The notes beneath the pieces were generated by a model, which did not search any database, had not been told where the DNA came from, and saw nothing but the letters and a program-made list of their open reading frames with translations. 64,000 bases of DNA from Oikopleura dioica (lineage: Eukaryota; Animalia; Chordata). Location of the stretch: assembly GCA_907165135.1 (NCBI GenBank), contig OU015567.1, positions 12,648,001-12,712,000 of the forward strand, given 5' to 3'. The translations under genes and the position numbers were made by a program. Within the stretch, counting starts at the first letter, position 1; every line of letters begins with the position of its first letter. Shown here piece by piece: positions 21,648-46,389 of this stretch.

Positions 21648-24600
21648 ATGAGGAGATTACTTCTTCTCGCTGGGCTGATATCAGCTGATAAACGTAAGTT
21701 TTAAAACTTTTTTTTGAATATTTTTTACGGCAAAAATCTTCATCAATTGTTGGAAATCCGTTTTCTTTTGAATTTCATGGCCAGATTTTCAATTAAAACT
21801 TCCTTATTTTTCGTTATCCATCCGTTTTTGGCCTTGAATTCTTTTCAATAAACGTCTGAATGAGATGTATGAATAGTTCGCTATCGGTCAAGTCAATTGA
21901 TCAAGCCGTTCGAGTCAGTTCGTATTTATTCAGCAAATTTGAAATTTGAAATTTTCTATTTTCAAAATTGGCGATTTCTGTTTACTTCCGAAGGAATAGA
22001 AAAAATTCATTGAACTTCAGCTGCCCTTTTTCCGGAGGGATGAATCTTCACAAAACTGGCAGTTTTGTTTGAGCCCCACTTTCGGGCTTAATCATGCATA
22101 TAACTTGAATTTTCTTGGCATTTCTATAATATTTTAGAAACGAGGCAAGCTGCGTAGCATCACTCTTTTCAGATCTTTTGCCAAGGTCAAATTATACAAA
22201 ATGAAAAATGCCTTATGCAGGAGCCCCTCTTTGAACTCGCCCCCTTTATAAGTGGATTAAAATTTCGCGCCCTGGTACCCTCCCTCCCCTACTTTTTTCG
22301 CTGGTAAAATAAGAAGGGACGCAGCGGGGTGCCATAAACCCACACTGACCTGGTTAGATTATGATTTCTGATTCTAACACACCGGCCAGAAGATTTGATA
22401 TTCGATTCAGATTCCGAATTTGAACCAAATCCAGCTGCTCCTGCAGCTTGGATCATCTCAATTTCTTCTTTGAATAGGACCTCTTTTTCGATGTGTTTCT
22501 TCATAAAAAATAGCCCTAAGAATGGAATGTGGTAGTTATCTCGGCAGTGGCACTTGTGTAAATGGAAAAGTGATTAACGGAAGGGTACACATCGGACGCG
22601 GTCCAGGATCTGCGCCGGCATTAAAATTAAATTAGTAGCCCCGGTAGTGGCTGATCCGACGACGCGGCCATGATTTCCGCCTCTCTCTTCTTTTTTTTGG
22701 AGCTCCATCAAAAATTTCAAATTCTAGCGTACCTTGTCGTGCCACGCAAGTTTTCTTTCGGCCCTTTATTAGCTTTTCCCAGGGTCTACCCGTAGCGCGC
22801 TCCAGCTTTTGATTAGAAAAGAAATTCCTTATCACAAATAATTTTCAAGAGCTTTTTGATCCTCAGGATTAAGGACTTCCGTATAAATAGAAGCTGCACT
22901 AGAAAATTAAGAAAAAGAAATCTCGGAGCTGGTCTATTTACTTTGCGTATCTTTTCTTTCATCGCGCCGCCCCAGATTTTCAAATATTTTCGCGAGGAGT
23001 TGAAAAATTTTCGAAAAATCCCACCCCGATTTCGTTTGATCACCACCTCCTTATCGATCCGAGCAGGTTTCTTCTGCAAATTTTAGCTCGGATTAGCGGG
23101 GATTTACAGATGGGAGTTTTGGGAACATTTGGGCAGAGATTTCTTGTCTAAGTTCCAGTTCGAAGTTTGATTTTGGATTAGTTTTTCGATTTTCGTTCTT
23201 TTATTTGCGAATTTGTCAAAAAAAAACGAACTGAAACTTCTCCTTGAAAATAAATCGTTCTAGTCTGATATAATCTTCTAGCGCTATCAATTTCAAAAAT
23301 TCGTAATTATCCACCGCAGTGAACATGTCCGGGCCGCCCTTTGATAAGTGAGCCGATTTCTTATCTACCTAAATTCGCCTTGCTACCTTCCGATCAGAAA
23401 TCAACCCCTGATCTAATTGGGCTCAGACGCGGCTCAGACTCGCACTGAACTTTTCCCTTTTCTAGAGAGAGGCGATTTCATGGGCAAATATCAAATTCGA
23501 AACACTCAAGTTCCCTCTTTCAGGAGATTTTTTTATCTATCACTCGTAATTCTGCTAAAATTCTGCAAATTCGGAAAATAGTTGCAGCATTATCTCACGC
23601 TCCAGGACTAACAGTTCAATCCGAGCTTTATAGACATAATAGCTGCTTTGCGCGACCCCGAAACAAGCAAGTGGGGATGAAAGGGTCGGATTATGACATT
23701 TTTCCTTCGGCACTCACTCGCTATCTTACCAGCTATAGCTCCTCACATGTAAAAGCCCAGCCGCATATACAAAAATATCGCCCTTTATTTCGAACAAAAT
23801 AAAATAAATCGATCAAGACCAGTGCTAGTTTTTTTTTCGTTGCTCGAAGCTGGAAAATATCAATTTCGCCAAAATGGCACATTCCATATGGCTGCTCAAG
23901 ATCATCCCTTTTTCTAATGGACAAGTCGCGAAACAGCTAATTAGTGTATTAGGCATTTTACAATTGATGCTGATTACATTGCATCGATTTTTTTGATCCT
24001 GGAAAAATGGGCGATTTGGGGCCAAATAATGAGGCGTAAGAATCTATTTTTCCAAAATCAAGTTCTTCGGAAAAACGAGGTTAGAATTTATGAAGAGGTT
24101 CCATCATCATGTTGTAATTAAATTCGATAATAAATGATCTTCTGAAAACGCGTGTTTCGATACTCGAAACATGCCACGATAGTTTGACCCTTTCCCGGTA
24201 ATTCCATAAGCAACGGTACCTAGCCTTCTTCAAACTGGCCTTGTTTGGAACAAAACGGATTTCCGACAAAATTTCTTGCCTCCAGCTAAACCTTCTGCTA
24301 ATCATCTTTTCAGGCTATATCCTCGACACATCAACAGAAACGTCTGACCTTGTCGGCCCGATCGGCAAGAGCTGGCACATTCCACCAGAATCAGAGGTAA
24401 GAATTCGACTATTTCTACAGAAGCAAATGCCAAAATCAACCACGTGTCAGGCTTACCATAATCACATTAAAAACTATTTACTCTATTTGAATTTTTTTCG
24501 CTGCACTTGGCGGACCTCCAGCTTCTTTCCAAGTTGATTTTTTTAGATGAAAACAAACACTATCTTCTGGCAAGAGAAGAGCAGAGTTTTTCGTCTTTGT

Positions 24601-27600
24601 TTTGTCTTTTCTTGCCACTACTGCTGCTTAGCTATTAAATTTCATAAAAGAGAGTTTCCCAAAGGGATCTTTTTTCCAGCGCGAGCTTCTTTTCCAAATT
24701 TACACGCAAATATTCGGCCCCTTGCAAAATCGGATATAGAAAATTGTCACGCAAGTCTATTAACTTCTTTATTGCGCGCACACGTGTTTACTCCAACAAT
24801 TTTAGTGGGAAGATGCCAGTACCAACGATGGCGACGGAATCCACTACCGAGCGTTGCAAATCTGCGAAATTCGAAATCCAAGCGATTCGTATGTTTATTC
24901 CCCGCTCATCCGAACCGAAGGCGCTCAGAAGGTGTTCGTCGAGATCAAGTACTCCCTTAGGTAAGTCAAAAGCGCAGCGCTTGATTAATCCGACAGGGAA
25001 AATCAAACGACAACAAGAGTCTTCCGGGGTTTATATATTTTTTATCCCCGGCGAGTCGTCAAAGTCGGCGTTCAAGCACTCTCGGAAGGCCCCCTAAAGT
25101 ACCCAGACTCCTTTTCAACAGATCAAGTGGCGCCGCTACTTGATACAGATTCTACTATCTACTATCTACTATAAATCTACTATTCGATTAAATAAACCTT
25201 TCTAGGGATTGCAAGATCTGCAGCGAGAGTATCGACATTTTGGTACAGAACGCAGCTGAAACTGGTCTCTTGGCAAACACGCGAAACTGGAGAAAGGTAA
25301 GACTTTGACCTCGTTTTCAAGGCTGGCTGAATATCCAAAATCTTGATGCATGGGGAGGGGGCAATAAATCACTTGTTCTGACCCAAGTGTCAGGTAAAAC
25401 GGCGAAAAATGGTCCGCTATCGGGTTGTTAATCCATCCCTCAATAGCACATCATCATGATCGATGGTTCCTAAACCACGTGACGGAGAAATATATCGATC
25501 AGGATATCCGCTGCTCGTTTACGCGTTTTTATCACCCTCCGAGCTGGTGATAAGAAAAAGAAGCTCTCGAAAACTGGTGTGAAGGATAAAATTCCCGCGT
25601 GGTCGGTTTTCCCTCCTCCCGTGTTCGGTTCTGTCTTGGAGAATCTGTGAGCTAAGGAAACGTGAATATGTTATCATCCGGCGGGGAATTTTCTCCTGAT
25701 AAGGCGCTAGCTACATCGGCCGTTTAATCTTCTCAAGAATGCGCCTCAAGATGTGTTGCGGGTTGCTTAGACGGCCCGACCGGTTTTTGTCGAAATTCGT
25801 TTTTTTGTTTCTGATAAGAAATATATTCGAATATAAACTTTTGAATTTGCGATTGATTGATAAGAGATAGATAAGAAATCTAACCGCAGAGTATTTTTTC
25901 TTACGGCTGCAAAACTCACTTTATACACGAACTGCGGGAAGTTTGATATTTTTCGCGTTTTTCGAATATTTAGGAGACAACCCTTGCCTAGCCACTATGG
26001 CGGGGAAAATTCTTGCGGCCGGCTGGCCACTCGGCCAAAAAGAAAGAGGGGGAACTTGTACTCTTGTTTATAGTTAGTGTTGGCGGCTGTTGGGTGATTG
26101 GTTTTTATCAAAGTCGAGTATTCCAAAACCACAAGTGTATTATTCAACCCGAAAGATTGAAATTCCATTTTTTTTCAAGAAATTTCCATGTTTTGCGGTT
26201 TTCGCTCAAAGAGCTTGAAAAGGGTGTGAAAGGAGTTGAAAACTTCCGGGTTAGAATTATGGCTAGAATTATCGAAGATCGGCGAATTATGTTGTTTCCT
26301 CACTTTTCAAAATCCGCCGAGCGGGTGGGGCAAAAACTGCTTATTTGCTCTCTTTCGTCGCTGGAATTTGAAAGTTGACGGGATGCTTATTTCGCCAGGT
26401 GCCAGGTCTGTGTATCAGAATCAAGCTGGGAGCAGGACCGGAAGTCCGGAAGGGATGAGAGGCTAATTAATTCTGATCGCGTTAATTTTCGCATTAGGAA
26501 TTGTAATTGATTAGCGTCTGGGGAGAAGGCACTCGAGCAGGGAATTTTAAACACGCTTGAGTCCTAAACGATATACAAAAATCCAGCTGGAGTTTTTACA
26601 AGCTCCCTCTCATCCCCTTTTCTGAATAGCACTCCATCGCTCCCAGGGAAGCTCTGAATAGGATCTTTTTCTTGGTAGGTTTTATGATATTTTTTTTTGG
26701 TGAATAAGGAGAAATTTTTCAATAGAAAGAAATTTCGGTAAGACAAAAATGGGATCGTGATCAAACGCGGTTTGGGTTTTTCATTGAATTGAGCGACGCG
26801 ATGTGTGCCCAAACGCGGTCATGTCGTAATCGTAACATCGGATAACAAAGAACGAGCTTAGGCAGCGTATGACAGGGTACATTCACCTTGCCGCTTTTAT
26901 AATTTATTTCCAGTATTAGATTATCTTGGCCTGTTAAAGAAAGTGCTCCTATAAAATAATGAGCTCCTGGAAAACTGCATAAAAGAAGGGTAGATCCAAA
27001 AGTGGACGTACTCAAACGCATGCGGGTTAGATTAGCTTTCCGCGGTGCCCGGCCCCTCAATTTCTTTTCGGCTACACTGATTAGGTACTAACTGCGTTCA
27101 CGTAATTCTCCAGCGCCGAGCTTATCCACCCTCGAGATTTGGTTTATTACACAGAACTTGCGCCGTTCTCACACCTCAGAAACCGCACCCATAGGCAAAA
27201 TTTCCTCGCATACTTTGAATATTCTTTACAGTTATGTGAACGTAACGATAATTGTAAAAAGCGCAATTTAAGTCGCCTGGTCACTTGTAATTCAACGCCT
27301 TTCTGAGCATAAGTGACCACTTTAACCCGAAATCGGCGATGTTCACGAATTTCGGAAGCCGCACTAGAATTTGGCTGATCCGTGCTAGAGTCTGCGTCGG
27401 AATTCCTTTTTATTATCGCAAGAAAACACAGCGGGTTACGTGGCGGCGTGATAAGCCCTTCTATTTGACACGGGACTGTCGAAAAAGCATAAAGCTTTCT
27501 GCCAAACGTGATGCATTCCAGACGCCGAAAATCAGCTCAACGGCGCAATCGGTAAATTACACCCTTGGATATTCTTTGCTGTTTGCGACACTATCTCCTT

Positions 27601-30600
27601 CCCACCCGGTAGTCCGATTTCAAACGCCACTTGAACTTGGGCCGGAACACATTACCGGTGAGGCGGCTCGTTTCCCGCCCATCAGCGGCGGATAGAAGCC
27701 GCTTACTCAAGTGCCTCGTTTGGTGAATCTTCCTTGTAGTTGCTTCGTGTTTTTAGAAAGCGATTTAGAGATGATTTGCATAAGATTACGGCCTTGCTAA
27801 CCTTGCAGTCATAACATTGTTACCTTCACAAAAATACCTAATTTCTACACTCATGTTTGATTTTGCGTACTCCTAGAATTCTTAAGCTAGACATTCTTAT
27901 ACATCTTTTTCTGGAACGCTGTCGGGCCTGGTTAGCTCAGTCGGTAGAGCGTTGGACTCTTAATCCAACGGTCGCGGGTTCGAGCCCCGCATTAGGCTCA
28001 TCTTTTCCCTTTTACATTCTTGAGTTTTTGATTGACACGTGACATGAATGTAACATTCACCATCCGCTGTTTCCGCTCATGTCAGAAACTTACGCAAGGT
28101 TCTGAACCATAAGTACGATCGAATGACGATAAGTCAAGGCTTAAAAAAAGATGGCAACCCCAGAGTTGCGAATTTTGTGAGCTAGCTGAGCTGAGCTATC
28201 TGAGCTAGCTGAGCTACAGCTCAGCTCAGCAATTTTGAGGTAAGGGTCAGCTCAGCTCAGCTCAGCTCAATTTTTCTGAAGAAAACTAGCTCAGCTCAGC
28301 TCAATAGTTTTTCGAAAAGAGCCAGCTCAGCTCAGCTAGCTCAATTTTAACCTCAGCTCAGCTAGCTCAGCTCATCTCAGTCTATTGAGCTGACCAAGAT
28401 CGAACCACTTTTGATTGGTCTTATTTTCAAAAACTTACACGTATTTTCTATTTCTGCTTTCCTGTTGGTCAGTTTTAGATAGAAATAATTCGAGTTTTCT
28501 TTGAAGCAAGAGAGAAATAAGATAAAAATAGCTTTTAATAAAAAATAATAAGGTACAGATGGTAAATATGTGATTGCAAATGTGAGAGACCCCCTAGAAT
28601 GGTCTAGGGGTGTGCGAGGGCAGGGGCTCCCTGTCCGTCTACTCTAGAAGGTTGAAACATTGGCTCACCCACATAAGTGATACCACTGTATCGTATTTTG
28701 GAGGATTTCTTATTGTTAAATGACAGAATAAATTTTTTTTATGTCAAAAAAGTGCGATGTTGCGAGTGAGATGCTGGTCTAGGGGTGTGTGAGGGCAGGG
28801 GCTCCCCTGTCCATCTACTCTAGAAGGTTGAAATTCGCTTCAACACATTTTGTTGACATTTTTTGTAGTAAATAAAAATCAGCTTTCTCAGCTCAGCTCA
28901 GCTAGCTCAGCTCAGCTCAGCTCAGCTCAGCTTAAAAAAATGGTCAGCTCAGCTCAGCTAGCCCAGTTTGAGAAATCATCAGCTCAGCTCAGCTCAGCTC
29001 AAAAATTTTCAAATTTGCCCCAGCTCAGCTCAGCTCAGCTCAATTTTTTTGAAAAAAATCAGCTCAGCTCAGCTTAGCTCAGTTGTTCTTAAAGGGGGCC
29101 AGCTCAGCTCAGCTCAGCTCAATTTCGACCTCAGCTCAGCTAGCTCAGCTCAGAAAAAAATTTCAGAAATTTGCAACTCTGGGCAACCCTAAACAAGGGC
29201 GTATTTATTTAACCCTCCGCGGTCAGGTTTGAGCACTTTGAGCAAGTTTATACGTAGGGTCCTTTTTTCCTTGAGCGGAGTACGAAGGAAGGAGGTTTGA
29301 GGAATCTAGAGTGCGATAAAATAATCGTTACTGAGGTTGATTTATTTGCCCAGGGATCGCGCTAATCCCCAGTTCGCAATTCTTATCATAATTAGGAAAG
29401 AAAGAGTTTCGAGGATTTTTTCGCCGCTCGGAAAACCGGGTGGTATCAGACACTAATGCGGATTAGTACTTGTCTCCCATTTCCTTCTGGAACAGAAACG
29501 CAGCACTTTTTCGTTTCTACTTTTCTTTCCATTGTGAATTGGAATCACTTTTGAAGCTGCTTGAGACGGATACATCCTTAGCTTTTCTCGATCTCAAAAT
29601 GCACCACGAACTGAATTGGCTCCTCTGCTTCCGGTATTCCACGGCAGAGCACTTGAATCACGTTCCCAGTTCACCAATTTGGGATAAAATCGAACTGATC
29701 ACACTCTCTGATCATCGGAGCGGCTCCACTCCACTTGAACATTTCAACCCAGCGATCTTCAATGATGGACACATTTTTCGCACTTAGAGCTGAAGTTTGA
29801 TCGATTTTGGCGTTTTTCACAGTAGCGGGCACTTCACCTGCCTCCCATGCATCAAACTGGGTTCCCTTAAAAATTCTAACAAAGCTAACGTGTTAATTTC
29901 AGGTTGCAACGCTTGAGGACGGATATCAGACGAAAACGATTGAATTGTCGACGAATGGAGACTTTTACTTGGCATACAAGGTAAGAAAAAGAATCTTATA
30001 TCAAGGATATTTAATACTTTAATTCCTACTACTACTGCAGATGGCGATAAAGCTGCCCTTCCGCTGAAAGTACACTCCGTTTTTTCATGTCAAAAGTTGT
30101 AACATGATGTTTGAGAGGCTAATTAATCCAAGCTACTAGTTTTTCAACGTTCCCGATTCCACTTTTCGCCAATAAGTGCCTCACGTGCGGATCGAGTCTA
30201 AAAATCACATTCTTCCGCTGTTTTTCTTAGATATAGCAGCTCCATATTTTGATAGGGGAGATTGTGGTGGAAGGGGACTAGCTATTTGCGGCGCCCCGAT
30301 CGGGACTCTTCTTTTGATAAGGGCTAAGCTGGCGCCGAAATCCATCATGTGTAGGGAAACTCGACGAAAAATGAGCTATTTTGGGCTTAGTAGGGAGGAG
30401 TATAATGCATGTTTAGAAAGCCCAGGAGCTGGGGATCATTTTGACTATTGACAGTAAGGGTTTGACTCATGCCCCGGGGCACTTTGGCCTTCCAAAGAGG
30501 CAAAATCTGGTACTCTCGGGAAAAGGGACCGTAGCTTCTAGTATCCCGGGTCTGTGGATATGAAACCTATACCAGATTGTAGAAGAGACTCTGACGGTTC

Positions 30601-33600
30601 AGAATATGTGTAGAAAACCATCGTTAGGCCCACTCTAGAGGGCGCTAGAGGCCCTAGAACTTGAGGAAGTTGGCCTAAAATCGCCACTCTTGGTCCCAAA
30701 AAGTACGAAACTGTTATTTTATTCGAGTAAAATATATTTAAGAATGTTTTAAACCTAAAATAATATGTCGGAAAAGTATTTTGGGGTCATTGAAGGTCAC
30801 TTGGGGTCATATTTTACAAAAAGAGATTTTCGTAGTAACTCACCCCGGAATATCTCATATGACCCAGAAATACTCTTCTTACATATTTTTATGGATAAAA
30901 AACGTCCTTAAACGTATTCCAGGCGAATAGAATAACAGTTTCGTACTTTTTCGGACCAAGAGTGCCGATTTTCTGCCAACTTCCTAAAGTTCTAGAGCCT
31001 CTAGCGCCCTCAAGAGTGGGCCTAACGATGGTTTTATACACATATTCTGGACCGTCAGAGCCTCTTCTACAACCTGGTATAGGTTTCTTATCCACAGACC
31101 CGGGATACTTGAAGCTACGGTCCGTTTTCCCGAGAGTACCAGATTTTTGCCTCTTTGGAAGGCCAAAAGTGCCCCGGGGCATGAGTCAAACCCCTTACTG
31201 TCAATAGTCAAAATGATCCCCAACTCCTGGGCTTTCTAAACATGTATTATACTCCCTCCCTACTAAGCCCAAAAAAAAGCTCATTTTTCGTCGAGTTTCC
31301 CTAATCATGTGGTGCAAAAACATTTTCATTTTGGAGCTGGATAAGTCCTTTGAAAACAGCCGCCACGAGGCTCCCATCCGCTCACTCAATAGCAGAGCTT
31401 TTGAGTTCGCAGCTGAGTCCTTTTCCTATCTTTCTAGAGTTGCATTTTTTATGTCACTTGTTGGCGCTTTTTTATTAAGAAAAAAGTACTCAGATTCTCG
31501 CTCCCCCAGGTGAAGAAAATCCACTTTTCCTGGCGCATAATTTCCCTTGAAAAACAAGCTCAACTACCTGAATCGCAGTTGAAAATTCTGAATTGAAAAT
31601 TGCAAATTTTAATCCGATTTTTCTAAATTTGCACCTCGGCACAGGCAGGTTTTTCCACCAAAGCCGCAGCGAACTAAAAATCAAATCAGCATCTCAGCTA
31701 TTAAAATATCTTCCAAACGCTCCATTATATTTTTTCAGGATCATGGCGCCTGCGGAGTGATTTTCTACACAAAGATCTACTACAACTTCTGCAAACGGGT
31801 GGAAAACGACCTGGCAGTTTTGAAAACCAGCCTGCTCCTGAACGCCGAGATCTGACCGTGTCTGGCTCTTGTGTCGCTCATGCTATCAGTGCTGATGGCA
31901 ATGGTAAGTTTGAATTAGGATTCATGCAAGATCCTCATTTGCAAATTATGCGTTTATTTAACACCGCCGCTGCGTAGTGATAAGAGCTGCCCTTGCGCAC
32001 CTTCTAAGATGCCATCCGCTGGCTCTAGTACCGAGAACTTTCACGAAATTCTAGCGACGTCATCATTGTTTGAATTCGCTCTCTCGGTGTGACACTATCG
32101 CCGGCGACTTCTGTCAAATAGCTCCTCTCATCTGATCAGTGCTCTGAGCACCACCGCTCCACTTATCGAGCCCCTCTTTTTAACTTCACTAGTCATCAAA
32201 AGTCGGGTGCTGAATTTTAGCGAATTCAATAAAATTCAGCGAGCTTGTGTTATTACATGACTAGACCATAACATTTGGCGTTATCATTATTCATGAAAAA
32301 CAGGGGGATGTATTGTTGTTTTCATTTTTTTCTAAAATTGTAATTTTAGAACCGACTATGACCTGCCTCAGCGACGGAGAGTGGATCAGCCAGCGATCAA
32401 GATGCGTTTGTCAAGCCGGTTATGAGCCCAACCGAGGCAACTACGCCTGTATCCGTAAGTACTAGGCAATCTTAGGAGGCTTATTCTTATGTAATGTGGG
32501 AGAAAAGGAAGCTGCTACTTACAATTAGGGTTATCTAAATCAATGATTGATTGCCAGGGAATGTGTATGAGAACCGGTTATTCACCATGTGGCGGGTTAT
32601 CAGTATGCAGATCCGCGCTTATACACGGCGGGTGATCAGTTTTGAGCCCTTGCCAATTGGGAATAGTAAGGTGAGAGGCAGAGCTAAATACCCCGTGATT
32701 AGCGAATGTTAGAATATCCTTCCGAGAAGCAGTAGAATCATGTAACATCAGCAGCGAGAGGAAAGGGAGGAAACAATTATCAGTGTGAGGGACAACGTGC
32801 TTGCGAGGGTCGTAATTGCGATTGTAGATACGAAAAGAAAACGCATTAGACCGACGGTGACGGCATAATGATAGCACTTAGCTTGCTCAGACTTCTTATG
32901 TAAATGTAAATGTCCGGCCGAGCCTTTTTTGAAAATTTCTTACATAAATCAAATTGAAGCTGAATAAGTATTTTGACAGGAATGCTCCCCCGCGAGACCA
33001 CAGACTCTTCAAGCAGGGACTTTGTAGCAAAACCCGCGAATTATTCGCGTATGGGTAATCACGTTATCCCGCCACGGCCCAAGAATTTTCGCCATTACCC
33101 GATGGAAAGATAGAATTCGCGCTTCTTCAACTAGAGTAGTGATCCCGATGCCAATGTCAACAGTAATTTTCTCCGACCGGGAAAATTGGAAAATTAGATG
33201 CTCTGGAAAAAATATTCCGCGAGCCAAGAAACATACGATTTCTTTTCTGGCGCGAACTTTTGAAGTTGATTCGCCGAAATCATGATTCTCTGAAAATGAG
33301 TACTTAATTATGCAAGGACCCCATAGCACCCTTGTTATGCTTCCCGTCTTGCGGTCTCGCCTCTTCAGCTCTCAGGTCTTGATCGCCGTTTTTGGGAGTC
33401 TCCCAAGAAGAATTCCAAAGCAACGCAAACACTCTTCCATTTGCATGATCTTGGAGGGTGCACTCTGATAAAACCGCGTTTCTAAAATGCATCCGGGAAG
33501 AAATCTTTTAGAAAATCGCTGGAAAAGTCTCAAAATTCGCCCACAACCGCGATGATGATTTACTTATTCCCTAAGCGGGCGAGGTTAATTGTACCTTTTC

Positions 33601-36600
33601 CAGCTTCGATTTCGTTATCTAACCCGGGCGAGACTGCAGCCGTGTGCGGCTGGCAGCGCGCAATTTGGTGGTGTCGCCAAAAAGGGCAATTAAAATCGCT
33701 ATTTCTTGGCGTGGAGTTGGCGTTTACTGTTAGAAGCTTGCGCTCTTATCACCTATCGCTGCTTTCCCGCTGCGAGAAAGAGTAACCGCCAAGTAAAGCT
33801 GCATAAACAGCGCTGGGTTCAAGGGGTGATACTAACTCTGCTCCACCAAAAATAACACATTAGAGATGGCAAAATTTTTGATAAAAGTAAACTTGCCCAC
33901 GTTTTATTTTTCCCTTATCAGCAAAATATTTCTCAATCCTCCTTATGGATTAATCCATAAGAAATAGACCACAAACAACACCTGAGATCGTCTCTCCAAA
34001 ATTCGCGCAGTTTCTCTTGTTTTACATCTTGTAAAATGCTATAACGGGCAGCTTTCAAAATTAGGCACAGCAAAAATAGATATTCAATGTTGGTATATCT
34101 CGCGATTCCGATTGTATGTAAAACACGCGGTCTTGATTTCATGTTTTCTTGCTCCTCAGATCACGTGTGTAGATTTTTGAGTCACATTTTTCATTATTTT
34201 TTCTTTGCGAAAGATTACGATTCTGTTTTTTCATCCCGGTAATTTCAATCCACGTTTTTCATATTTGCAAAAACTTTCCCACACAAGAGTACCCCACGGT
34301 GGAGGATTATCTTGATGTCGCAAAAATGCAAATCACCCATGTTATACCCTCGCAATTAAAAACAATTCCTGAAGCACCTATCCTCCGCTTAGTGACCTGG
34401 GCTTCCGGCTCGGGCTAATCATGACGACTCATGGCGCGACCTCATTATATAACAGTGCGGGGAAGTGCCTATGCTGGAATGCCTAAATGAACTAAACCTG
34501 ACTGAAGTCATTTCCGCCCTTTCTTTTCTCCTCCCGTTCCATCGAGAAATCGCTACGGCGCCGGCGCCAACGGACTCTGCTCGGGCTTATCAGTCAATGG
34601 TACTCCTTGAGCACGGCTATCAAGTGGTCAACTCATTCCGAGAAGTGAATGGGCACCTCCACCATCGAAGAGCGATAGCGCAAAACTGATCTCCAATTTT
34701 TTGTGTGGTCATTTACCGACCCAACGCGGTTAGCCCGCCATCTTTTTGATTTCTCGTTCTTTGAAGATTAGATTTTCTAGTGGCAATTGTAATAGATTAA
34801 TTGTGAAATATTAACTCGGCCGGGGATTCGAAAAAGTGATAGAACAACAAATTATAACGTTACGTCGAGATTTGCGGATTTATTCTGCTTATCAAAAATG
34901 TATTGAATTGCTAAAACAAACTCGCAGCTAACTGTCCGTCGGATAATCCACCGACGTAGGGGCCTTATCAGCTCACTCGGCAGGAGCTTTCACTTTCGCC
35001 TCTTCACTTGAGACCCTTTTGTAATGTATTTTTCTAAAAGCTTAGCTGTCGAGAAGTCAAAATTTACCCAGACCGCGTATTACTCTAGCAGTCGAGTAAC
35101 CACTCGGGTGCGAAAACAGACACTCGTGCGCCAGCGAGTTAAGCAAACAAGCCGATAAGGACCAGCCGGTTCCTGCGCTCGTAAATGGCCGTAAATTGAG
35201 GCCAAACGTTGCCGGAACTTATTTAGAACGTAATATTTTTGTTACGGAGCTTGGAAATGCACCACGTCGCACAAAAATAAGTCTTAACCCGTTCTTATCC
35301 ACGGTGTCAAGCTGGTGAATTTGGCCGAATGCGCCGTTTCTAATCAACTTTCCCAGGGCGGAATTAAAGGTTACGTCAAAATGTGCCTAGAGTGCCAAAA
35401 CAAAGTCCAGAAAGTCTTGGGATTGTAGTTGAAATGCCTTCCTAAATATGTAATATAAATTTTTTCAGCAATATTCTGATTACGGTTGTTCTGGGTGGAG
35501 GTGGCGCCAGGAAGGGAAGCGAGATTTTTATCTTATCAGTCTTTTTTGTTGTTCAATCCTCTGGCGTCATCAGCAGTTGGTTGAAATAATGGGCAGTGGG
35601 AGTAATCTCGTCCGGATCAAAATCCCGAATAGATTCCCTATTTTGTCAAATCCGCCCGCCACCTCGTCACTGCTGACCGAGCTTGCGGGGAGCAAATGAA
35701 AATATGGCACAGTTGGGAAGGAGATCGCAGGGTTAGTGGCTCAAAATCCTGGATCATAATATTATCCTTTTGCGCGATTTTCTAGTAACCCGACTTTTAA
35801 TCTACCGTCGATGGAAATAAGTAATGGCCAGTCGTTCCATGAACCCGTGCCGCTACTATGTAAAAATGAGAAATATTTAAAAGCGGCAGCGGCAAAGTTT
35901 GGAACTTTCGGAACAAACACTCGCCCAGTAGCACTTCCTCTCTTCACTAAGAAACTTAACCCCCTGACAACGTCTAACGTAAATATTCAGCTTGCGGAGA
36001 GGACCAGTACAAGCCAAAACAAGGCAACGAAAAGTGCCTCGTCTGCCCAGCAAATTCGGCGTCTTTTGGACTTGGAGCGACCCAGTGTACTTGTCTCGAT
36101 GGATTCTACAGAGGAGAGCATGATCACGAGACTGCTCCTTGCTACGGTAAGAAAAAAACATTGATTACCCCAGATTTGATGTATTCTTCTAGGAATTCCA
36201 TCCGAGCCTCTGGCGCTAGAATACACGATTATCGACGATGTAGTTGACATCCGCTGGTCCTCGCCAACAACAGATGGTGGTCGATCCGATCTCATGTTCA
36301 GGTAACCACCTTAACACTTTCCCTACCGAACCAGCACCACGTGGTTGAGATCAGAGCTCTGGATGCCAGCCCACATACTCGCTGAGCTAATTGCGGTCGC
36401 CAAGGTGCCTCAGACGGCTATTTCGGAAAAATGTTCAATAGCATGTCCGTCGCAGAGTATTTTTGTCGACTCCGTCTTTGATTAGAAATGTCCAAATCGA
36501 AAAATAGTTGAAAGCCCAACATGCATATTTTTGAATTCGATTGTCAACTCAGAGTAGTCGCGAATTTTACCTATAGAGAGCACTTTCTTTCGGCCAATTT

Positions 36601-39600
36601 AATGAAAAAAAAACGCGGTGAACGATTTGCAATCTGCGAGCATTGGTCGTTTTGAGCTGCGTGTTTTGCGGCCCTATCGCTCCAGTTATCATCACCACTA
36701 GCAGGTTTTCTAACCATAACGCAACCTGCAACGCGCCAATATGCCAAAAGTACAAGCTGATATCCATAAGAGTATGATTTAGAAAAGCGGCGAAATCCGT
36801 ACTTTATCATGTACTTTTTCTCAACCAACGCATATCTATACCAACAAGCACGATATACCAACAGCTTCCAAAATTGGAAATAGGCTCAATTCGCTTGAAA
36901 CAGATGAAAATCGAGGAGTTAATATAAAATTTCCAGCTCCAGGAATTTCTTTAATAAAGAAGGAATGCTACGCGTCCTTCTGATTATCACTTTCCGATCA
37001 TTTTTTCAATAAGTTTGTTTTTGGAACGGGTTCAAGAACACCCGCGCTAGAATTCAGATAATAACTGTCTTTTGCTATATTTATAATCGGGAATGTATTC
37101 GGCTTCACACGCATTTACGATTTTCGGCGAAGCATATTTACGATTCAGCAGGAACAATGTACTTTTTCGTTTTTCCCAAAACTAATTCTACACCACTCAT
37201 TAGCTATTCTCTACCTTCGTTTGTGTTGATTCCGCGAAATGAGAAAAGAGCTTACGGAGGATAATGAATTTCTGGCTTTGCCAAAATCGCGGGATGACGC
37301 CTTCTAAATCAGATTTGCGGGAAAGAGAGGATGAGACGGCCTGGGAATCTGACCTCGTCGGGAAAAGCACTCTCGTGTGGTCAAGTCTTGGTCTTGTACC
37401 AGCAAGAAGGACAAGCTGGAGTCGCGCCTTGGTCAATTTCTGGTCATCGGCCAAGTCATTTTTGTCATTTTTTTTCTAGCGCGCAGCGAAAATTGATCTT
37501 TCTTTCAGATTGATGCATTTTGATCCTCTCTTGATTCTTTTGAAAATAAAGAATTTTTTGGCATGACGCCACGTGACCGTCTTTTGTCACTTAGAAGGCG
37601 CCTTGAAAAATGGAGATCTAGTTATGCACTCGCTTCTTGCGCTGCGTCTTTTGGAAACTCGATTCTCTGGACGGCGTAATAAATGATGGACAGGCTATCT
37701 TTTCCGTCATGCTCCAGTGCCAGTTATTAACACGTTGTTCTTTCAGACTCGAGTGCCAGCAGTGCGAAGAGGGATGGAGAAGCTGCCGACCCTGTGGAAA
37801 CACCGTCCAGATGCCTTCAGAGGAGATTCGCCCTAATGCGGTCCAGAACTTCGTGAAAATCCGTCAATTAACGGCAAATACTTCCTACCGCGTCAAGGTA
37901 AATAGAAAACACCAATTCTCTATTTTTCAACCCCTCCCAGTTCCCGTGATGTGTGCGAATGTAATATTTAGACACTTTCTAAAAACGCGCCATCGTAATT
38001 TAAAATTGAGGCGCGGCTAACTTACTTTTTCAGCCTCTATTTCTGGAGGCTTACCGCTCCGTAATCCTGATTATAGATCCGCAAATGCTTCCGGTCAAAC
38101 GCGGTTTCACTACGTTTTCGTTTTAAACTTTCCTTTTTTTTTTGCTCGGATGCGATACCGCAAGACGTTATTCCACACTTTGTCCGTTGCATAAAGTGCG
38201 TTGCGTTCTCAGAAAGTACTTTCTTTCCAGACTAGTTTTTTAACCTCGTTCTATTAGCTTATATGTTCCGAAAGAAGTATTTTTCCAAGGAAAGATTTAT
38301 ATTTCTCATGTACTTCAGAACTACTGAGCGCTGACTTTTCCCTTGAAAAGGGTTAAAAAGAGGATAATTTTCTGACTTGCCTATTTTTAGAAAGGAAGTT
38401 TTATGTACGTACCTATTTTTGAAAATCTGACGGAAAGAGCGGAAGCCTTCCAAACGGATAAGATTGTAAACACCGGAAGTGACCAACTATTTACTTCTGC
38501 AACATTGTAAAACCTCTCAGGTCATGAGATTACAAAGAGCTTTGCAATTAACTTTACTTTCGCCATTCACCTGCCCCTACTTTCCCAAGCTTTTATCGTA
38601 ATAGAGCAATTAATTATGAATTTCTTTTAGGTTCACGCTTTGAACGGAGTTTCTGACGTGGCTCAACAGGCGCCGAACTTTGGAGAAGTCCGATTCCGAA
38701 CTCAGTCGAGCCAGTTCCTAAACTCTGATTCCAGCGATTTCTCTTATTACAACAAGATCGTCGGCTCCGTCATCGTCACTGAAAAGGATGAAACATCTGC
38801 GCGACTAAGCTGGTCTCGACCGACCGGTGCTGTGGACCAAGTTTTCGAAATCCGACATCGTGCCAACTCCGCCCGCTGGAACATGGACACCATGCGCAGC
38901 GCGGATTACAAGCTCATTGGCTTGCTCCCGAATACCGAGTACACTGTTCAGGTAAGAACAACATTACCCTTGTCGAGCGTGCGCTTAGCCTACCCAACTA
39001 TTTTGTTAGAAGTTTTAACGATTAAAAATTAAGGCTCTCATTCCAAATATCTAAAAATTTCCCTAATTCTCTATTTTTAGGTTCGTGCAATTGTCGATGG
39101 AGAATACGGCCCCTGGTCTACAGAAGAGATATTCAGAACTACTCGATCAAATGAAGCTGTTCAACTGACAGTTACTGAAGAAGAAGAGCCTGTTAGCTGG
39201 CTGATTGTCATTGTCTTTGCTGGCCTTGGAGTTGTCACTGCCATGGCTGCAATTGTTATCTTCATAGTCCGAAGAAATTCTCGAAGATGGTCAAAAGAGT
39301 CTCGTGGTTCTTTCTGGGGAGGACAAACTTCTGGCCCCGCTGGAACAATGGATGCCACTGTTGATCTCATTCCCTGCAAAATCAATGCACCCGAGTTCTC
39401 CTACGTCGACTCAAGAACTGAGACCGCCACTTACTCTTCTTTTAATTCCTCTGGTTCCGACCCTTCTCGAGTAATTGTAGAAGCCGACATCGGCCACGAC
39501 GGCGAGTTTACTTACTCCTACGGAAAACTCAACGGTCGCGATGTCGCCATCAAAGCCAGTCCCGTCAACGTCGAATCACTCCGCCGCGAAGGCGAAGCTC

Positions 39601-40226
39601 TTGGCCAATTCGACCATCCAAATGTCCTTCGCTACGAGTCTATCAATGACAAGTACTCTCCCTACTACCTGATCACCGAGTTCTGCCAAAAGGGCGCTCT
39701 TTCTGATTTCGTCCGAACAGCCCGACCAGACTCGAAGCTCTCTACTCGAATGCTCCTTGATGTTGCTGAAGGATTGAGCTACCTCCACCACCAGAAATCC
39801 TACATCCACGGCGCAATCCAAGCGAGCAACATCATGGTCGCTGCTGATGGCACTTCTAAGGTTTCCGGCTTCGGAGACAATTCTCCTGATGCAATGCGAT
39901 ACGCCGCACCAGAATGCATCGCCAACAATCGAGTTTCAAACATTTCCTTCCACTCTGACGTCTGGGCGTTCGGAATTCTCATGTGGGAAGTCTTCTCCAA
40001 TGGTGAGCGCCCATACGCTGCTTTTGAAGATGCTGATATCGTGCCAGAACTCGCTCGTGGTCAGCGACTCCCTCGTCCAACTGGCTGCCCTGAGCCGATT
40101 TTCAACTTGATGGTCGCTTGTTGGAGCCAAAGTCCTTCCAACCGACCTCACTTCCACGAGATCGTCCAAGAACTCGACCGAGTTCTTTGTGAAATGACGA
40201 ATGTCCCTACTGGTGTTGCCGTCTAA
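21648..40226 (+). CDS. Eph: Eph-family receptor with predicted pseudokinase domain and no SAM domain (12 exons: 21648-21693, 24314-24396, 24806-24960, 25206-25296, 29903-29980, 31739-31903, 32350-32454, 35991-36146, 36193-36301, 37747-37897, 38631-38951, 39081-40226; about 868 aa)
   Basis: Signal peptide MRRLLLLAGLISA. Ligand-binding-domain motifs (YILDTS...WED...RALQICE...GAQKVFVEIKYSLRDC...GDFYLAYKDHGAC), Cys-rich region (PTMTCLSDGEW...CVCQAGYE; CLVCPANS...CTCLDGFYR), two FN3 repeats (GGRSD, GEYGPWS), TM segment and tyrosine-kinase fold. All introns are GT-AG. Exon 6 is 1 nt short (see findings). Confidence 0.92.
27926..27998 (+). tRNA. tRNA-Lys-CTT: tRNA-Lys (anticodon CTT), inside Eph intron 4
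   Basis: GCCTGGT/ATTAGGC acceptor stem, D arm GCTC-AGTCGGTA-GAGC, anticodon arm TTGGA-CTCTTAA-TCCAA, T arm GCGGG-TTCGAGC-CCCGC, and a downstream T-run terminator. Confidence 0.95.
28161..29181. mobile_element. hAT-type MITE (1021 bp) with subterminal (CAGCT)n arrays
   Basis: TIR CAGAGTTGC(G/A)AATTT at both ends. 8-bp TSD GGCAACCC (28153-28160, 29182-29189). Dozens of CAGCT/GAGCT pentamers at about 28180-28390 and 28878-29152. Confidence 0.9.
28600..28833. repeat. Pair of ~58-bp direct repeats (28600-28657, 28775-28833) inside the hAT MITE
   Basis: TGGTCTAGGGGTGTG(C/T)GAGGGCAGGGGCTCCC(C)TGTCC(G/A)TCTACTCTAGAAGGTTGAAA occurs twice. Confidence 0.85.
30352..31303. mobile_element. hAT-type foldback MITE (952 bp) with about 400-bp TIRs, in Eph intron 5
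   Basis: Starts TAGGGAAACTCGACGAAAAATGAGC and ends GCTCATTTTTCGTCGAGTTTCCCTA. 8-bp TSD ATCATGTG (30344-30351, 31304-31311). Confidence 0.95.
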
Positions 40227-40817
40227 AGAAGAGCTTCATCCAATTTCAAAAACTAACACAGGAAAAACCTTATTCAATCCTTTCATTGTGAAAAAACACC
40301 ATTCTGCCCATTATAAATTATGCTCTGAAAAAAATAATATATTTGTACATAGTCAAAAATAAACCCGTTCCATTAAAAGAATTTTTGTCTCATTCTTTAG
40401 TCAGAGTCGAATATTTATGATCCCTCCCTAAATTGAATAAATTTACGAGTACAGGAGAAGGAGAAAAGTTTAATGTTAAGCTCGCGAAATAAAATAAACC
40501 AAATCCTTGTCATGATAAAAAAAATGTGATTGGAAAAGTTGACACGCGCGACTACTCCAAAATCAGCTTGTAAACTAGTCGTGCTCCATCAGAGTTTAGA
40601 AAGGCTAACACAGTGTTTTCTTTTCTTTTACACAATTATGAGCCATTTCTCGGGAGTACTTTCGGTTGTTCAAGCTCAATTGAAAGCTAATGATCAAAAA
40701 CATTTTAGACTGGTGGTTTCAATTTATTTCATAAATGATTGTAATTTGATTCTAGTGAGATAGACGAGATAAACTTGTAGATGCTTCATTGTTTTTCAGA
40801 GGCAGGGATAAGGCAAA

Positions 40818-43800
40818 TCATCGGCCAAACATGTTTACAACGGAATTCATTTGTTGAGCAACACAAACATAGCTGAAAGAAATTGTAATCAACTATTTAC
40901 AAATCAAAAATCATTAATTACCTCGCGCCGAAATAGCCTCTGTAAACTCTTCTTCCGTTCGGCTCTCCGGTATTTTTGTCAACGCATATGCACGCGTGGC
41001 CAGAAACAGGACATTGCACCTCGTTGTAGAATCCAGCTCGGTCACAGCTCTTTGTTTCGCCAGTGCTCATTTGAGCTTCGATACATGGGCCGTTCAGAAG
41101 AGCCTCGCAATTCGGAGGAGCTCGGGCGAACAGTCCTCGAGTTCGAACTCGCGTTCCTTTTTTTGTGTTTGAGATTTTTTCAAGAAAACGACGATTTTAA
41201 AAATGAAATCATGGAAGACTATCTCAGAACCATTCCTGGAAGTTCATCTCCGATGGGCGTCACGCACCAGCAATTATTAGCGTCGCATTGTCTCGCCAAA
41301 TAAAATCCTCTTTCGTTGCATTTCGGTAGCATTGGAGCAGATGCTTGGCCTCTGTAATTGTAGAATTGACCGTATGGAGTGAGAGACGTTTTTTGGCGGA
41401 TTTCATCAATTCGTTCCGCGCAAGGGCCTGGGATGATTATTTTTTCGCGACAGTCCATTTCTGTTCTTGCGAGTTCTGGATTCCCCTGCAGCATTTTTCG
41501 GGTATTGTCTTTCTCCAGGCCGTCCTTGTCAGAGCACCAACACTCTGAAACAGTAGAAGCAACATCCTGCGAGCATTGAATTTCGCTGTAGTCACCGTTG
41601 TCCTCGCAACTTGGCAATCTCGCGGTTCCTCGCGGAAGGAGAATGTTTCTTTTGTACTCGCTCTGGCACGCTGACAGTACCTCTCCCTCTGGTTCGAAAA
41701 AGTCGCGTCCGTTGAAATTCGACTCGTACAATCCGAGGATATTTTTCGTACATTCCATTTGGTCCATTTTGTAAGCATTTCGTAGATCGAATTGAGAGCG
41801 AGTTCGAACAACTTCTAATCCATCTGGGAAAACGCACCAGCAACTTTTTTGAACTGGATTGCACTGCTTCGGTGCGTAAGTGCCATCCGGATTGCAGCTC
41901 AAATAGATCGCAGTTGTTGTTTGCCCGCCAAGACGGGAATCGATGCAGTTGAGGGACGGCTTCGTTGGAAGGACTACTGGAAGTGTTTTGGTCGTTGTCA
42001 CGGTCGTTGTTGTTGGTGGAGGAGTAGTCACTGGGGCTGGCTGACAAATTCCACATGATTTTTTGCAATTTTGCTGGAGAGTCGGATACATGCAAAAATT
42101 AACTGTTCCACCTTTGATCAGATCTGCACAGTTGACGACAACATCCACGCAAGGATCCGGAGCTTGAGTGACTTGGGGTTGAGGGGGCTGATATGAATTC
42201 ATTTGAGGGGCTTGGTAGTTGGTAACAACTGAGGCAGTTATTCCGGATTGACTGGTTTGAGGCTGGTTCATTGAAAAAGATGGCTGATTGTTCATTGGTG
42301 GCTTGTAGATTGTAGGAGGTTGCTGCTGATCAGGTGAACTGAAAACGGGTTGATTGTTGGTTGGCGGTTGAAAGATCATTGCCGCTTGCGTAGTCATAAC
42401 TGTCTGGGCAGTTGGACTTAAACTTGTTTGGACTTGGTTGGCAACAATTTGGGCGGTTATCGACGAACTCAATTTAGTTTGAGCAGTTTGATCGCACAGT
42501 CCACATGTCTTTTTACAAGCAGTTTGCATTGTCTTGACTGTCATACAATTGTCTCTTAGATTCTCACACATGTACGCGGGTTTCATCGTATCAACACAAG
42601 CTGGTTCAGAGACAACATCAGAAGTAATTTCAGTTTTAGGGGAACCATTTCTTTTCAATGGCTTGTATTCAGGCTTGTCGCAATTTCCGCAAGATTTTCG
42701 ACAGAATCCGAGAGCAAATGTCGAGTATTTTACTGGATCACATCTCTTTTTGAACACTTCTAGTTGGCACTGAGTTGGGTACAAGTCTTTACATGTCGAT
42801 TTTGGCTCTATGGCAACTGGAGCTAGAGTTGGAGCTGGCTTCTTTGGTTCAAAAAAGTCTCCACATGCATCCTTGTTTTTGCATGTAAAAGCACATGCAG
42901 TCTGCAAAGTTGGTCCGGAAATGAGGTCGTCGCATTTTTCAGCAAATTTAGTACAATCTGGCATAATATCCATGCATGTTTTGGGCTTCTCTGGTGCTTG
43001 GGTAGGTTTTAAGCAGATTGAAGAGCAGGCTTTTCCGTTGGCCCACATAAATTCGCCTTCTGGACAAACACATCCTGGCATGCATTTGCTCTCATCACAG
43101 AGCTTTTCTTCGTCTTCTTCGCCGCACTTGACTTGGCAATGAGCCTTGCATTGGCTGAAGATCATTCCGTCCGGGCACGTTATTCCGCCGCTGATTCCGG
43201 AAGACTCTCGTGTATTCGACACAATATTGTCGATGATTTCTTGGTTCTTGAGAATATTCAGATTTGCTTGTTCAATTTGAGGATTGAAATACTCGCATGT
43301 CTTTGAGCAGCTTCCGTCAGGCCTCAACCATTCGTTTGGATCTTCACAAACGCATCCGGGGACGCATCTTCTGGTGCAAAATCTTGGGTTGTAGAGTGGC
43401 TGACGGCATTGTTTTTGACAGTGACCATTGCAAGATGACCATTTTGTTCCAGGATAGCACATTGGCACATCTGTTAGAGCGGGCTGTAAGGGATCTGCGG
43501 ATAATTCAGGAGTTTCTGGGAGTTTGATATTGCTCATGTAGTTTTTCACGATGACGTTGAAATAGTTAGCAAAAATGCCATAAGATGTGCCTGAATCGAG
43601 TTGCTTGAATTCTTCAAGGGCAGTTTGAGCTTCCTCATTCCATGATATCAGGGTTGGGTAAAATGATGGAGGATAGACGGTATTTTCAGCTTCTTTAAAT
43701 TTTCTCATATAATCATTTAGCGTTCGTCTCAATTCATCAGTCCTGGCAAAGCGTTTTCGCTGCTCAGCCATTTTCTTCTCCGCTTCAGAAATATTGTCGC

Positions 43801-45032
43801 ACTGAATCATAACAGCAGCGTCCTTTTCGCATGGAATGTTGGAAGGAAGAGCCCAAGTTGACTGAGAGCAATACGAAATCTTTTCCTCATCCCCGTTGCA
43901 GAGAATCGGCGTCGCCATCATTGACGGCTCGTATTTTGGAAGAAAAACTTTCATCTGTGGCGCTTGGCGGAGAGCAGCAGAGGGACCGGCTCGATCGAAC
44001 CCAAGTTGGCGGCAAATCACCCCAGCAAGGTTTGCATCCATTTGATCTCTGCAGATGAAGCCCCATTCTCCTCGATGAAAAATGCTGACGAGTCCCTTCC
44101 TTGATTTTTTGTTTGAGTTTCTCAAACGAATAACACCTTGAAAAAATATTTCTATCAATTTCGATTGATTATATACCTTCGCTAGTGTCAGATTTGAAAC
44201 TTCCATTTTCATCCGGCTCGCACTCCATTAGATCCATATCTTCAACATAATTGAAACTAACTTTCGTCCCTCTGATTTCGTCTCCGTCTGGTGTAGAGCA
44301 CCAACAGTTTCTGTTTTCTTGGTCACATTGTTTTTTGTAAAAAGTGCCGTCCAAGTTGCAGACGGGTTTGTACTGGCCTGGAAACACTGCGCCTTGGTTT
44401 TCGATGACTTTCTGATAGGAGATGCACTCGCCGGTTGCTTCTTCGTTTGTGCACTGGATAGAAATATCTGCAAACGATGTTACTGTATGCATAAAGTTAG
44501 CAAACAAACCCTTGTTGTGGTCACATTCATCAGTTGCAGAAACCGCCCCGCAGTCCATGAGTGATTGTTCTCCACCATAGCACGTGACATCCTTTGAAAA
44601 GGTTGGATACCTATGTAAAATTTTCTAACGATTTTTCCATCGAACCTTTCCTGAACAATAATTTTCTTGTCTTCTAATTCGGTCAAGCTACCATCAAGCA
44701 AATTCGGACCGTATCTTATGGCGCGCTTGAATCCTATCTTTGAACAGACGAGATCAGCGGCTGCTTGATTGAACCCAATTGAGCAGACCGTTCCCCAGCC
44801 ACCGTTGTTGACATTGACCATGAGCACGCCCTGACCAAGTTCGGTCCCAGTTTGGCCAAAAGAAAAGTTTGCCTCGTCAACTGAGTGATGCAGCTTCATT
44901 TCCATCTTTCAAAAGTTCAAATTTTTCCTTCACTTTTCAATCTTATTTACTTTATAATTTCTGCTTATGAACCCTTAACTTTTTCTGCGCATTGGCGGAA
45001 TGCGCCAGCGCTAGAACCCCCAGCAGCTTCAT
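40818..45032 (-). CDS. Large secreted mosaic protein: SP-SRCR-TY-SRCR-TILx2-ShKTx3-Q/P/T-rich linker-ShKT-TYx4
   Basis: Signal exon MKLLGVLALAHSANA (ATG 45032). SRCR motifs GWGTVC and GEWGFIC. Thyroglobulin-1 QC...CWC repeats. TIL repeats (CYPGTKWSSCNGHC...PGCVC). ShK C...CxxTC/SCxxC repeats. A further TY exon lies at about 41156-40920 and the stop at 40818-40820. Confidence 0.88.
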
Positions 45033-45724: not shown

Positions 45725-46389
45725 AGCTCTCAAGTTGTTTTGTTCTTTCTGACACAAAGCAATTGAACGTTACTTCTAAGATGCGGATTATTATTTATTA
45801 CCGTTATGATATCTCAAATGAGGACGTTCTGTTACTAAATTTAAGCTTATAATACCAGGAGCTCACAAGATCAGTTCACTAGAATTGATTCTTTTCATAA
45901 GATGACCAAAATTTTCATCAATACAGTAAGCGTGAGCTAAAACCACAAAATAAGTCGCGCAAACTTTTTGATATTTGCCCGGAAGACCACCACAGAAGCG
46001 GCTATTTGAATACATAGAAGACTATTGATCTCGTTTCCGACAAGTGTTCCCAAGAAAAAATGATGAGTGGCTATTCTGAGACACTGTGAGCTTAACTGGT
46101 ATTATAGAGGGGTCTGCTGTTTACATTGGTTTGGTTTAAAGCAAGGTGCTTTCCTCCTGGTGCTTAGCACCATGGAAACAGGCGCTTTCATTAGGAGCCG
46201 CTGAAGAGCTCTTTGATTGAAATGTTTAAGCCTTTTCAATGGCTGCCATGCCAATATCATCAATGAGGACAATGGCCGCGATTGTTGGGCTATCAGATAG
46301 AATTTCAGCACTCTCGCAAGCCGGCAGCAGGAAGGTGCTTTCATTAGCTTCAAATTCCAGTTAGAGACAAGAACTCAAAAAACAGCAAA

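Follow-up and report, generated by a model that had tools for sequence, protein, structure and literature searches.

A strongly conserved and expressed Eph receptor of Oikopleura dioica with a predicted loss of kinase activity and no detectable SAM domain

A window of 64,000 nt from the planktonic chordate Oikopleura dioica (contig OU015567.1, positions 12,648,001 to 12,712,000 of the forward strand; positions below are counted from the first nucleotide of the window) contains an 18.6 kb Eph gene (21648-40226, plus strand, like all features of the gene given below) in which two aspartates that are essential for canonical kinase catalysis have been replaced. The results make it likely that this gene encodes a bona fide Eph receptor that is incapable of canonical phosphotransfer and is maintained as a working gene, with a non-catalytic co-receptor or scaffold function as the proposed mechanism. 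The annotated protein encoded here is CAG5113452.1 (Oidioi.mRNA.OKI2018_I69.chr2.g7561, P0154, 857 aa), and its orthologue in the Norwegian assembly is CBY20497.1 (UniProt E4WRW5, P0155, 849 aa), which is annotated as 'Receptor protein-tyrosine kinase'. In an exact cluster look-up, these two proteins were the two annotated members of the cluster. They were used for all full-length analyses, while all other searches were performed exon by exon.

A first-pass annotation, made from the nucleotide sequence, had assigned the gene to the Eph family, and five Pfam families in the annotated protein substantiated this assignment. The ephrin-binding domain (PF01404, Ephrin_lbd) covers residues 18-169 (E 1.2e-17, 65 bits versus a cut-off of 27). 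The cysteine-rich region matches PF25599 (Ephrin_CRD, 39.7 bits) and PF07699 (Ephrin_rec_like, 23.9 bits), both above their cut-offs. Two fn3 stretches (E 6.8e-18) are followed by a predicted single transmembrane helix, and the tyrosine-kinase domain was recognized with high significance (PK_Tyr_Ser-Thr, PF07714, E 8e-51). The best sequence matches in the PDB were mostly Eph kinases (EphB1, EphA3, EphA2, and others; E about 1e-38 to 1e-39), and the two top-scoring entries were not Ephs, namely an EGF-receptor entry that matched in two stretches and a Src-Abl ancestor construct. A word-index protein search with the kinase region retrieved two tunicate Ephs, followed by about 100 chance matches to BMX/Tec kinases; no O. 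dioica protein appeared among the matches listed.

The SAM domain is missing. No Pfam match to it was found in CAG5113452.1 or CBY20497.1, the stop codon directly follows the C-terminal GVAV, and a tblastn search with five Eph SAM regions gave no match downstream of the stop up to position 46000. The sequence, the Pfam search, and the tblastn search thus confirmed that the protein ends in GVAV without a SAM domain, as had been noted at first reading. The last three residues, VAV, form a hydrophobic-x-hydrophobic tail, a putative PDZ-binding motif that parallels the GIAV of the Ciona savignyi Eph. Because Ephrin_lbd, Ephrin_CRD, Ephrin_rec_like, fn3, and PK_Tyr are all present in the annotated protein, it is, judged by its architecture, a true Eph receptor that is without the SAM domain only.

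The states of the kinase motifs were determined by a residue-by-residue alignment with EphB1 (3zfx) and with tunicate and vertebrate Ephs. HGA (39807-39815) is aligned to the HRD motif of EphB1, EphA1, EphA6, and the Ciona Eph, so that the catalytic Asp is replaced by Ala, and GFG (39867-39875) is aligned to the DFG motif of EphB1, with Gly in the place of the Mg-binding Asp. The Gly-rich loop is degenerate, reading IGHDGEFT (39489-39512) versus IG-x-GEFGEV in active Ephs. Only 10 residues lie between GFG and APE, versus about 27 in EphB1; therefore, the activation loop is about 17 residues short and its tyrosine is deleted. VAIK with the beta3 Lys (39543-39554), the alphaC Glu (39588-39590), and APE (39906-39914) are retained. 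These losses and retentions had already been reported in the first-pass annotation, and the alignment bore them out with correct coordinates. The catalytic-loop Asn is also kept (HGAIQASN). The interval of 39480-40226 originally proposed has the right end; its start lies in the middle of an exon, which begins at 39081.

A pseudokinase is defined by sequence as lacking at least one of the VAIK Lys, the HRD Asp, and the DFG Asp, and here both the HRD Asp and the DFG Asp are absent. Judged by these residues, canonical phosphotransfer has very likely been lost, and the receptor would signal without phosphorylating. An AlphaFold2 model of 39420-40223, based on a 22-row alignment, had a mean predicted local distance difference test score (pLDDT) of 87, a predicted template-modelling score (pTM) of 0.86, and a normal two-lobed secondary structure, and its best PDB matches in a Foldseek search were EphA2 kinase domains (template-modelling scores of 0.84-0.87). 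The model thus predicts a well-folded kinase fold rather than a remnant.

In the juxtamembrane region, the first Tyr (YVD, 39402-39404) occupies the canonical JX1 place and is invariant, so that the notion of persisting juxtamembrane tyrosines holds for this residue. It does not hold for the second: the canonical JX2 place is occupied by Glu, and the second Tyr (39432-39434) is found four residues later, where it trades places with a Phe three residues further on (39432-39443; ATYSSF in Okinawa, ATFSSY in Norway, and ATYSSY in several environmental variants).

The motif states are fixed in O. dioica, as far as ten sequences from different individuals and lineages represent it. The comparison comprised the gene models of both assemblies (Okinawa and Norway) and contigs from JGI (three), ENA, and Logan, with 88-92% identity to the protein of the window. 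All ten share HGA, GFG, and the short activation loop, and every full-length C-terminus among them has the VAV tail. Hardly any variation is seen in the C-terminal tail or from the transmembrane helix through the juxtamembrane region. In the Norwegian type, VGIK stands in the place of VAIK, with the Lys retained. Two independent assemblies, several environmental contigs, and RNA reads all have the same motif codons, and therefore neither chance nor sequencing error explains HGA and GFG. A metagenome scan for further orthologues yielded two close contigs only, one of which was already known.

The gene is under strong purifying selection between two deeply diverged lineages. At the DNA level, the coding sequences from Okinawa and Norway share an identity of about 80%, but the proteins are 91% identical. 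The ratio of nonsynonymous to synonymous substitution rates (dN/dS), estimated after Nei and Gojobori for the O. dioica lineages from Okinawa and Norway, was 0.036 for the last exon (dN 0.050, dS 1.38), a value that, like those below, is rough because dS is near saturation, but which still excludes neutrality. Within this exon, dN/dS was 0.028 for the transmembrane and juxtamembrane part (dN 0.045, dS 1.63) and 0.042 for the kinase part (dN 0.052, dS 1.26). For the summed ectodomain exons it was 0.06 (dN 0.058, dS 0.97), with a span from 0 to 0.18 over twelve ectodomain blocks. The ligand-binding exons have 92-100% amino-acid identity and dN/dS values of 0.02-0.11.

The gene is also transcribed and correctly spliced. 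A JGI contig of 1831 nt (L027) matches the Norwegian gene in three blocks at 99-99.7% identity, and the gaps between them, of 587 and 94 nt, coincide exactly with the introns; since it is colinear with three exons and the introns are absent, it represents a spliced transcript. Reads from three oligo-dT RNA-seq runs of O. dioica covered exons only, with a depth of up to about 60-95-fold on the kinase exon, and revealed three splice joints (36145>36192, 36302>37748, and 38949>39079; GT..AG). From position 39814, the consensus of the RNA reads continues the HGA codons as AIQAGNVMIAS, that is, the Norwegian-type sequence. In addition, two contigs from a marine metatranscriptome are 95-99% identical to the window, of which one includes a splice to the upstream exon. 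Thus, the motif codons that had been read from the genome recur in RNA reads, and the gene is both transcribed and non-neutral. Taken together, the fixed motifs, the low dN/dS, and the expression indicate a functional gene.

The degenerate kinase domain is not unique in this species. A scan of the whole assembly with Ephrin_lbd revealed four clear Eph loci, of which one has canonical motifs and three have degenerate motifs. The canonical Eph (G000:C5, at about 10.65 Mb; below, C5) lies about 2 Mb from the present gene on the same chromosome and has VAVK, HRDLAARN, DFG, GEGEF, and a full-length activation loop; no SAM domain was detected at this locus, but the last visible exon ends at a splice donor. 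The second paralogue (G000:C4:9739633-9749200, plus strand, at about 9.74 Mb, L024/L029; below, C4) has kept the Lys and reads HRDLQCAH and DFS. It is unlike the present protein in that HRD is kept and a SAM domain is present, the only one that is detectable in an O. dioica Eph. The third (G000:C1:10681263-10682018, minus strand, at about 10.68 Mb, L013; below, C1) has VAIK and, in the place of HRD, LRH; DFG is absent, a SAM domain was not detected, and the C-terminus is QIAV. Its dead kinase domain is encoded in one open frame of 444 codons and is preceded by no juxtamembrane tyrosine. The present gene, with VAIK, HGA, GFG, and the GVAV end, is the fourth.

In an exhaustive protein search, a single additional near relative came up (P0024/P0165, 33-37% identity), which is encoded on contigs from Tara Oceans and other ENA marine metagenomes (L030-L032). 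P0165 has HRQ for HRD, AKY for DFG, and no beta3 Lys, so that all three catalytic residues are gone; its activation segment is equally short, a SAM domain is absent, and AVAV forms its C-terminus. When compared with the whole O. dioica genome, P0165 matched the present gene best (E 2e-32 and 4e-17; next locus 1e-15), and its source is presumably another larvacean. Both C1 and P0165 share with the present protein the juxtamembrane motif type T-x-D-x-x-[VF]-D-L-[IV]-P; they are 23-37% identical to it and have no juxtamembrane tyrosines. These motif comparisons suggest an origin of the dead, SAM-less design before that of O. dioica.

A kinase-domain tree was calculated from 19 rows, comprising the present gene, its Norwegian orthologue, environmental variants, single paralogue exons, tunicate and vertebrate EphA sequences, and Tec/ZAP70 outgroups; EphA10, EphB6, and EphB sequences were not part of it. 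Ten of the 16 inner branches stayed open, and the stems were long (4.2 changes per site for the present gene, 8.0 for C1, and 6.4 for P0165). With so little resolution and such very long branches, the tree speaks neither for nor against a single loss event for the degenerate O. dioica Ephs. As a tentative proposal, which we hold to be possible without giving it preference, larvacean Eph signalling has been rebuilt into a system of one catalytic Eph and old, strongly conserved non-catalytic Ephs, and the present gene and P0165 belong to a SAM-less, PDZ-tailed pseudokinase lineage that predates O. dioica. If so, larvaceans would offer a natural case of Eph forward signalling that proceeds mostly without kinase activity.

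A decoy, a scaffold, or a trans-phosphorylated co-receptor had been proposed at first reading. By analogy with known kinase-dead Ephs, the most probable role of the present protein is that of a non-catalytic co-receptor or scaffold, brought into clusters that ephrins induce. Such a role fits because the ligand-binding exons are conserved, the YVD Tyr and the VAV tail are invariant, and the folded pseudokinase domain with its Lys-Glu pair is constrained. The conserved ectodomain would still bind ephrins and co-cluster with other Ephs. The canonical C5 Eph, or a cytoplasmic tyrosine kinase, may then phosphorylate the JX1-type YVD tyrosine in trans and thereby create an SH2 docking site, while the VAV tail could recruit PDZ scaffolds. 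The pseudokinase domain itself would serve as a rigid docking or allosteric module and might, like human EphB6 and EphA10, bind a nucleotide in the absence of a cation.

Several points weigh against this proposal. Only one juxtamembrane Tyr is invariant, and the C1 paralogue and P0165 have none; therefore, trans-phosphorylation is not the shared function of the subgroup. Ephrin binding and co-clustering are inferred, and the loss of catalysis is a prediction from the sequence. Furthermore, the RNA-seq runs stem from a non-Okinawa lineage of O. dioica, with most reads less than 90% alike to the window, so that the expression of the Okinawa allele rests on the two short metatranscriptome contigs.

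The first alternative to a co-receptor or scaffold is a pure ligand sink or dominant-negative decoy, with the cytoplasmic domain as a mere passenger. The very high conservation of the ligand-binding exons would suit a decoy, and kinase-deficient Eph forms are thought to dampen, or attenuate, signalling (PMC6993872). However, a passenger domain would be expected to have decayed or to be truncated at a dS of about 1.3, and the constraint on the cytoplasmic exon equals or exceeds that on the ectodomain (dN/dS 0.036 versus 0.06), with an almost invariant transmembrane-juxtamembrane stretch and C-terminal tail. Because the constraint thus includes the cytoplasmic part, a pure decoy is unlikely. An even smaller chance is given to the alternative that the kinase is still active by a non-canonical mechanism, with other residues replacing the aspartates, as in some atypical kinases. 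The retention of the beta3 Lys, the alphaC Glu, the catalytic-loop Asn, and APE, together with the strong constraint on the kinase domain, would be in accord with activity, but neither the catalytic base nor the Mg-binding Asp is left, the Gly-rich loop has degenerated, and the activation loop has been deleted along with its regulatory Tyr. In addition, the Norwegian lineage has VGIK for VAIK, and the relative P0165 is without the beta3 Lys. Lastly, although O. dioica evolves fast and Arcas et al. (PMC6993872) see its rapidly evolving genome as part of the reason for its Eph motif losses, the readings as a decaying pseudogene or as an artefact of sequencing or assembly were rejected as extremely improbable, given 13 of 13 exons in frame in two assemblies, spliced transcripts, a dN/dS of 0.04, and identical motif states in ten independent sequences.

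The exon structure of the gene was derived from CAG5113452.1, which aligns with the window in 13 blocks without mismatch (21648-40223) and is thus encoded in 13 coding exons on chr2 of OKI2018_I69; the reading frame is intact across all of them in both assemblies. Exon 1 (21648-21693) contains the start codon, the signal peptide MRRLLLLAGLISADK, and the first base of an Arg codon; it matches residues 1-16 exactly and is followed by a GTAAGT donor. Exons 2-4 (24314-25299; about 24314-24396, 24806-24961, and 25205-25299) encode the first two thirds of the ephrin-binding domain as exact peptide blocks, with dN/dS values of 0.02-0.03 versus Norway, and the Ephrin_lbd match of the genome scan at 24803-24979 falls into this region. 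The ligand-binding domain continues in exon 5 (29904-29980, exact block, dN/dS 0.11). It ends in exons 6 and 7 (31739-31903; 31739-31798 and 31831-31903, exact blocks), where the cysteine-rich part begins and where positions 141-176 of the Ephrin_lbd profile match 31688-31792 in the genome scan.

Exon 8 (32348-32455) encodes the sushi-like Ephrin cysteine-rich domain (Ephrin_CRD, E 3.8e-5 for the exon alone and 5e-10 in CAG5113452.1), and exon 9 (35991-36146) encodes the EGF-like cysteine-rich region (Ephrin_rec_like, PF07699), which is covered by RNA reads and by a metatranscriptome contig that joins it to the upstream exon. The first FN3 domain is split between exons 10 and 11 (36193-37900; about 36193-36301 and 37747-37900), which are exact blocks, are delimited by the RNA joints 36145>36192 and 36302>37748, and correspond to fn3 in CAG5113452.1. 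Exon 12 (38632-38951) contains the second FN3 domain (fn3, E 1.5e-7). After an intron at 38952-39080 (joint 38949>39079, cut +2), the single long open exon 13 (39081-40226) encodes the end of this FN3 domain, the transmembrane helix, the juxtamembrane region, the pseudokinase domain (39480-40190), and the C-terminus. The transmembrane helix (39198-39269), a hydrophobic stretch of 24 residues followed by RRNSRR, was read from the sequence and not with a predictor. GVAV occupies 40212-40223 and the TAA stop codon 40224-40226. The first AATAAA 3' of the stop (40358-40363) is the likely polyadenylation signal; the RNA depth is about zero after 40278.

O. dioica is known for tiny introns, and the gene is long by that standard. 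Its introns include ones of 2.6, 4.6, 3.5, and 1.4 kb, and the large introns are retained in the Okinawa and Norway lineages; the Norwegian orthologue spans 19 kb with an identical exon order (L028 10001-28968). The 4.6-kb intron between coding exons 4 and 5 harbors a tRNA-Lys(CTT) gene (27926-27999, plus strand, ARAGORN), which is not part of the Eph coding sequence, and, at 28178-29153, several arrays of GAGCT/CAGCT-type pentanucleotide repeats, partly within units of 35-36 nt. Large open frames inside the introns of the gene had no Pfam match. The downstream neighbour (41219-44212, minus strand) encodes a large secreted mosaic protein with SRCR, thyroglobulin-1, and TIL domains. In the Norwegian assembly, the gene for the mosaic protein (L028 35405-38968, minus strand) likewise follows further downstream, separated from the Eph gene by three other genes.

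Part of this picture was known before. The gene was annotated, the class of Eph pseudokinases is established, and the legend to supplementary Figure S10 of Arcas et al. (MBE, online 2019; PMC6993872) states that only one O. dioica Eph has canonical motifs. Thus, the uniqueness that had been ascribed to the gene was overrated, with three of the four Eph loci degenerate and this fact already in print, and the gain in knowledge is incremental and modest. The four O. dioica Ephs in the accession table of the same study do not include E4WRW5; a literature search found no paper that names the accessions of the present gene or an Oikopleura Eph pseudokinase. New here are the evidence for fixation, purifying selection, and expression, the SAM-less, PDZ-tailed design, the picture of one canonical Eph among four, and the distant environmental relative. 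A degenerate domain with a dN/dS of 0.04 also corrects the impression that the loss of Eph motifs in O. dioica is noise of fast evolution.

EphA10 and EphB6 are poorly understood, and non-catalytic Eph signalling has been studied mainly in cancer cells. An independently evolved, selected dead Eph would be a second natural data point on Eph function without catalysis, set in a tiny planktonic chordate that has four Eph loci, one canonical kinase among them, and no SAM domain in the present protein.

Named sequences that match the kinase region best are canonical tunicate Ephs, namely Ciona savignyi Q95YL0, Ciona intestinalis F6ZVC5, and a Clavelina EphA4-like protein (35-36% identity). They have the same ectodomain architecture and the hydrophobic-x-V tail in common with the O. 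dioica protein, but they differ from it in their intact HRD and DFG, a full activation loop, the juxtamembrane tyrosines of the YxDxxTYEDP type, and a SAM domain.

Among the vertebrate Ephs, EphA10 resembles the O. dioica protein as a dead Eph kinase that reads GFG in the place of DFG (Liang et al., 2021, PMC8454701), has lost the Asp of the catalytic loop, and still possesses its ectodomain. However, EphA10, like EphB6, has lost the beta3 Lys and kept the SAM domain (PMC8454701), whereas the O. dioica protein has VAIK, a short activation loop, and no SAM domain. EphA10 and EphB6 are gnathostome paralogues, and EphB6 lost its activity in mammals only (PMC6993872). Because the O. dioica protein is the opposite of both paralogues with respect to the beta3 Lys and the SAM domain, it is a sound inference that it originated independently of them, and the GFG that it has in common with EphA10 is most simply explained by convergence. 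EphB6 differs further in that its DFG reads RLG, and the O. dioica protein has one conserved juxtamembrane Tyr. By analogy, EphB6 is nevertheless the best functional model: in this kinase-dead Eph, an active Eph, EphB4, phosphorylates the juxtamembrane tyrosines in trans, and these then bind the SH2 domains of Abl, Src, and Vav3 (PMC8454701). Both EphB6 and EphA10 bind ATP with a Kd of about 94-95 uM (about 94 uM for EphB6), despite the absence of the Asp residues (PMC8454701).

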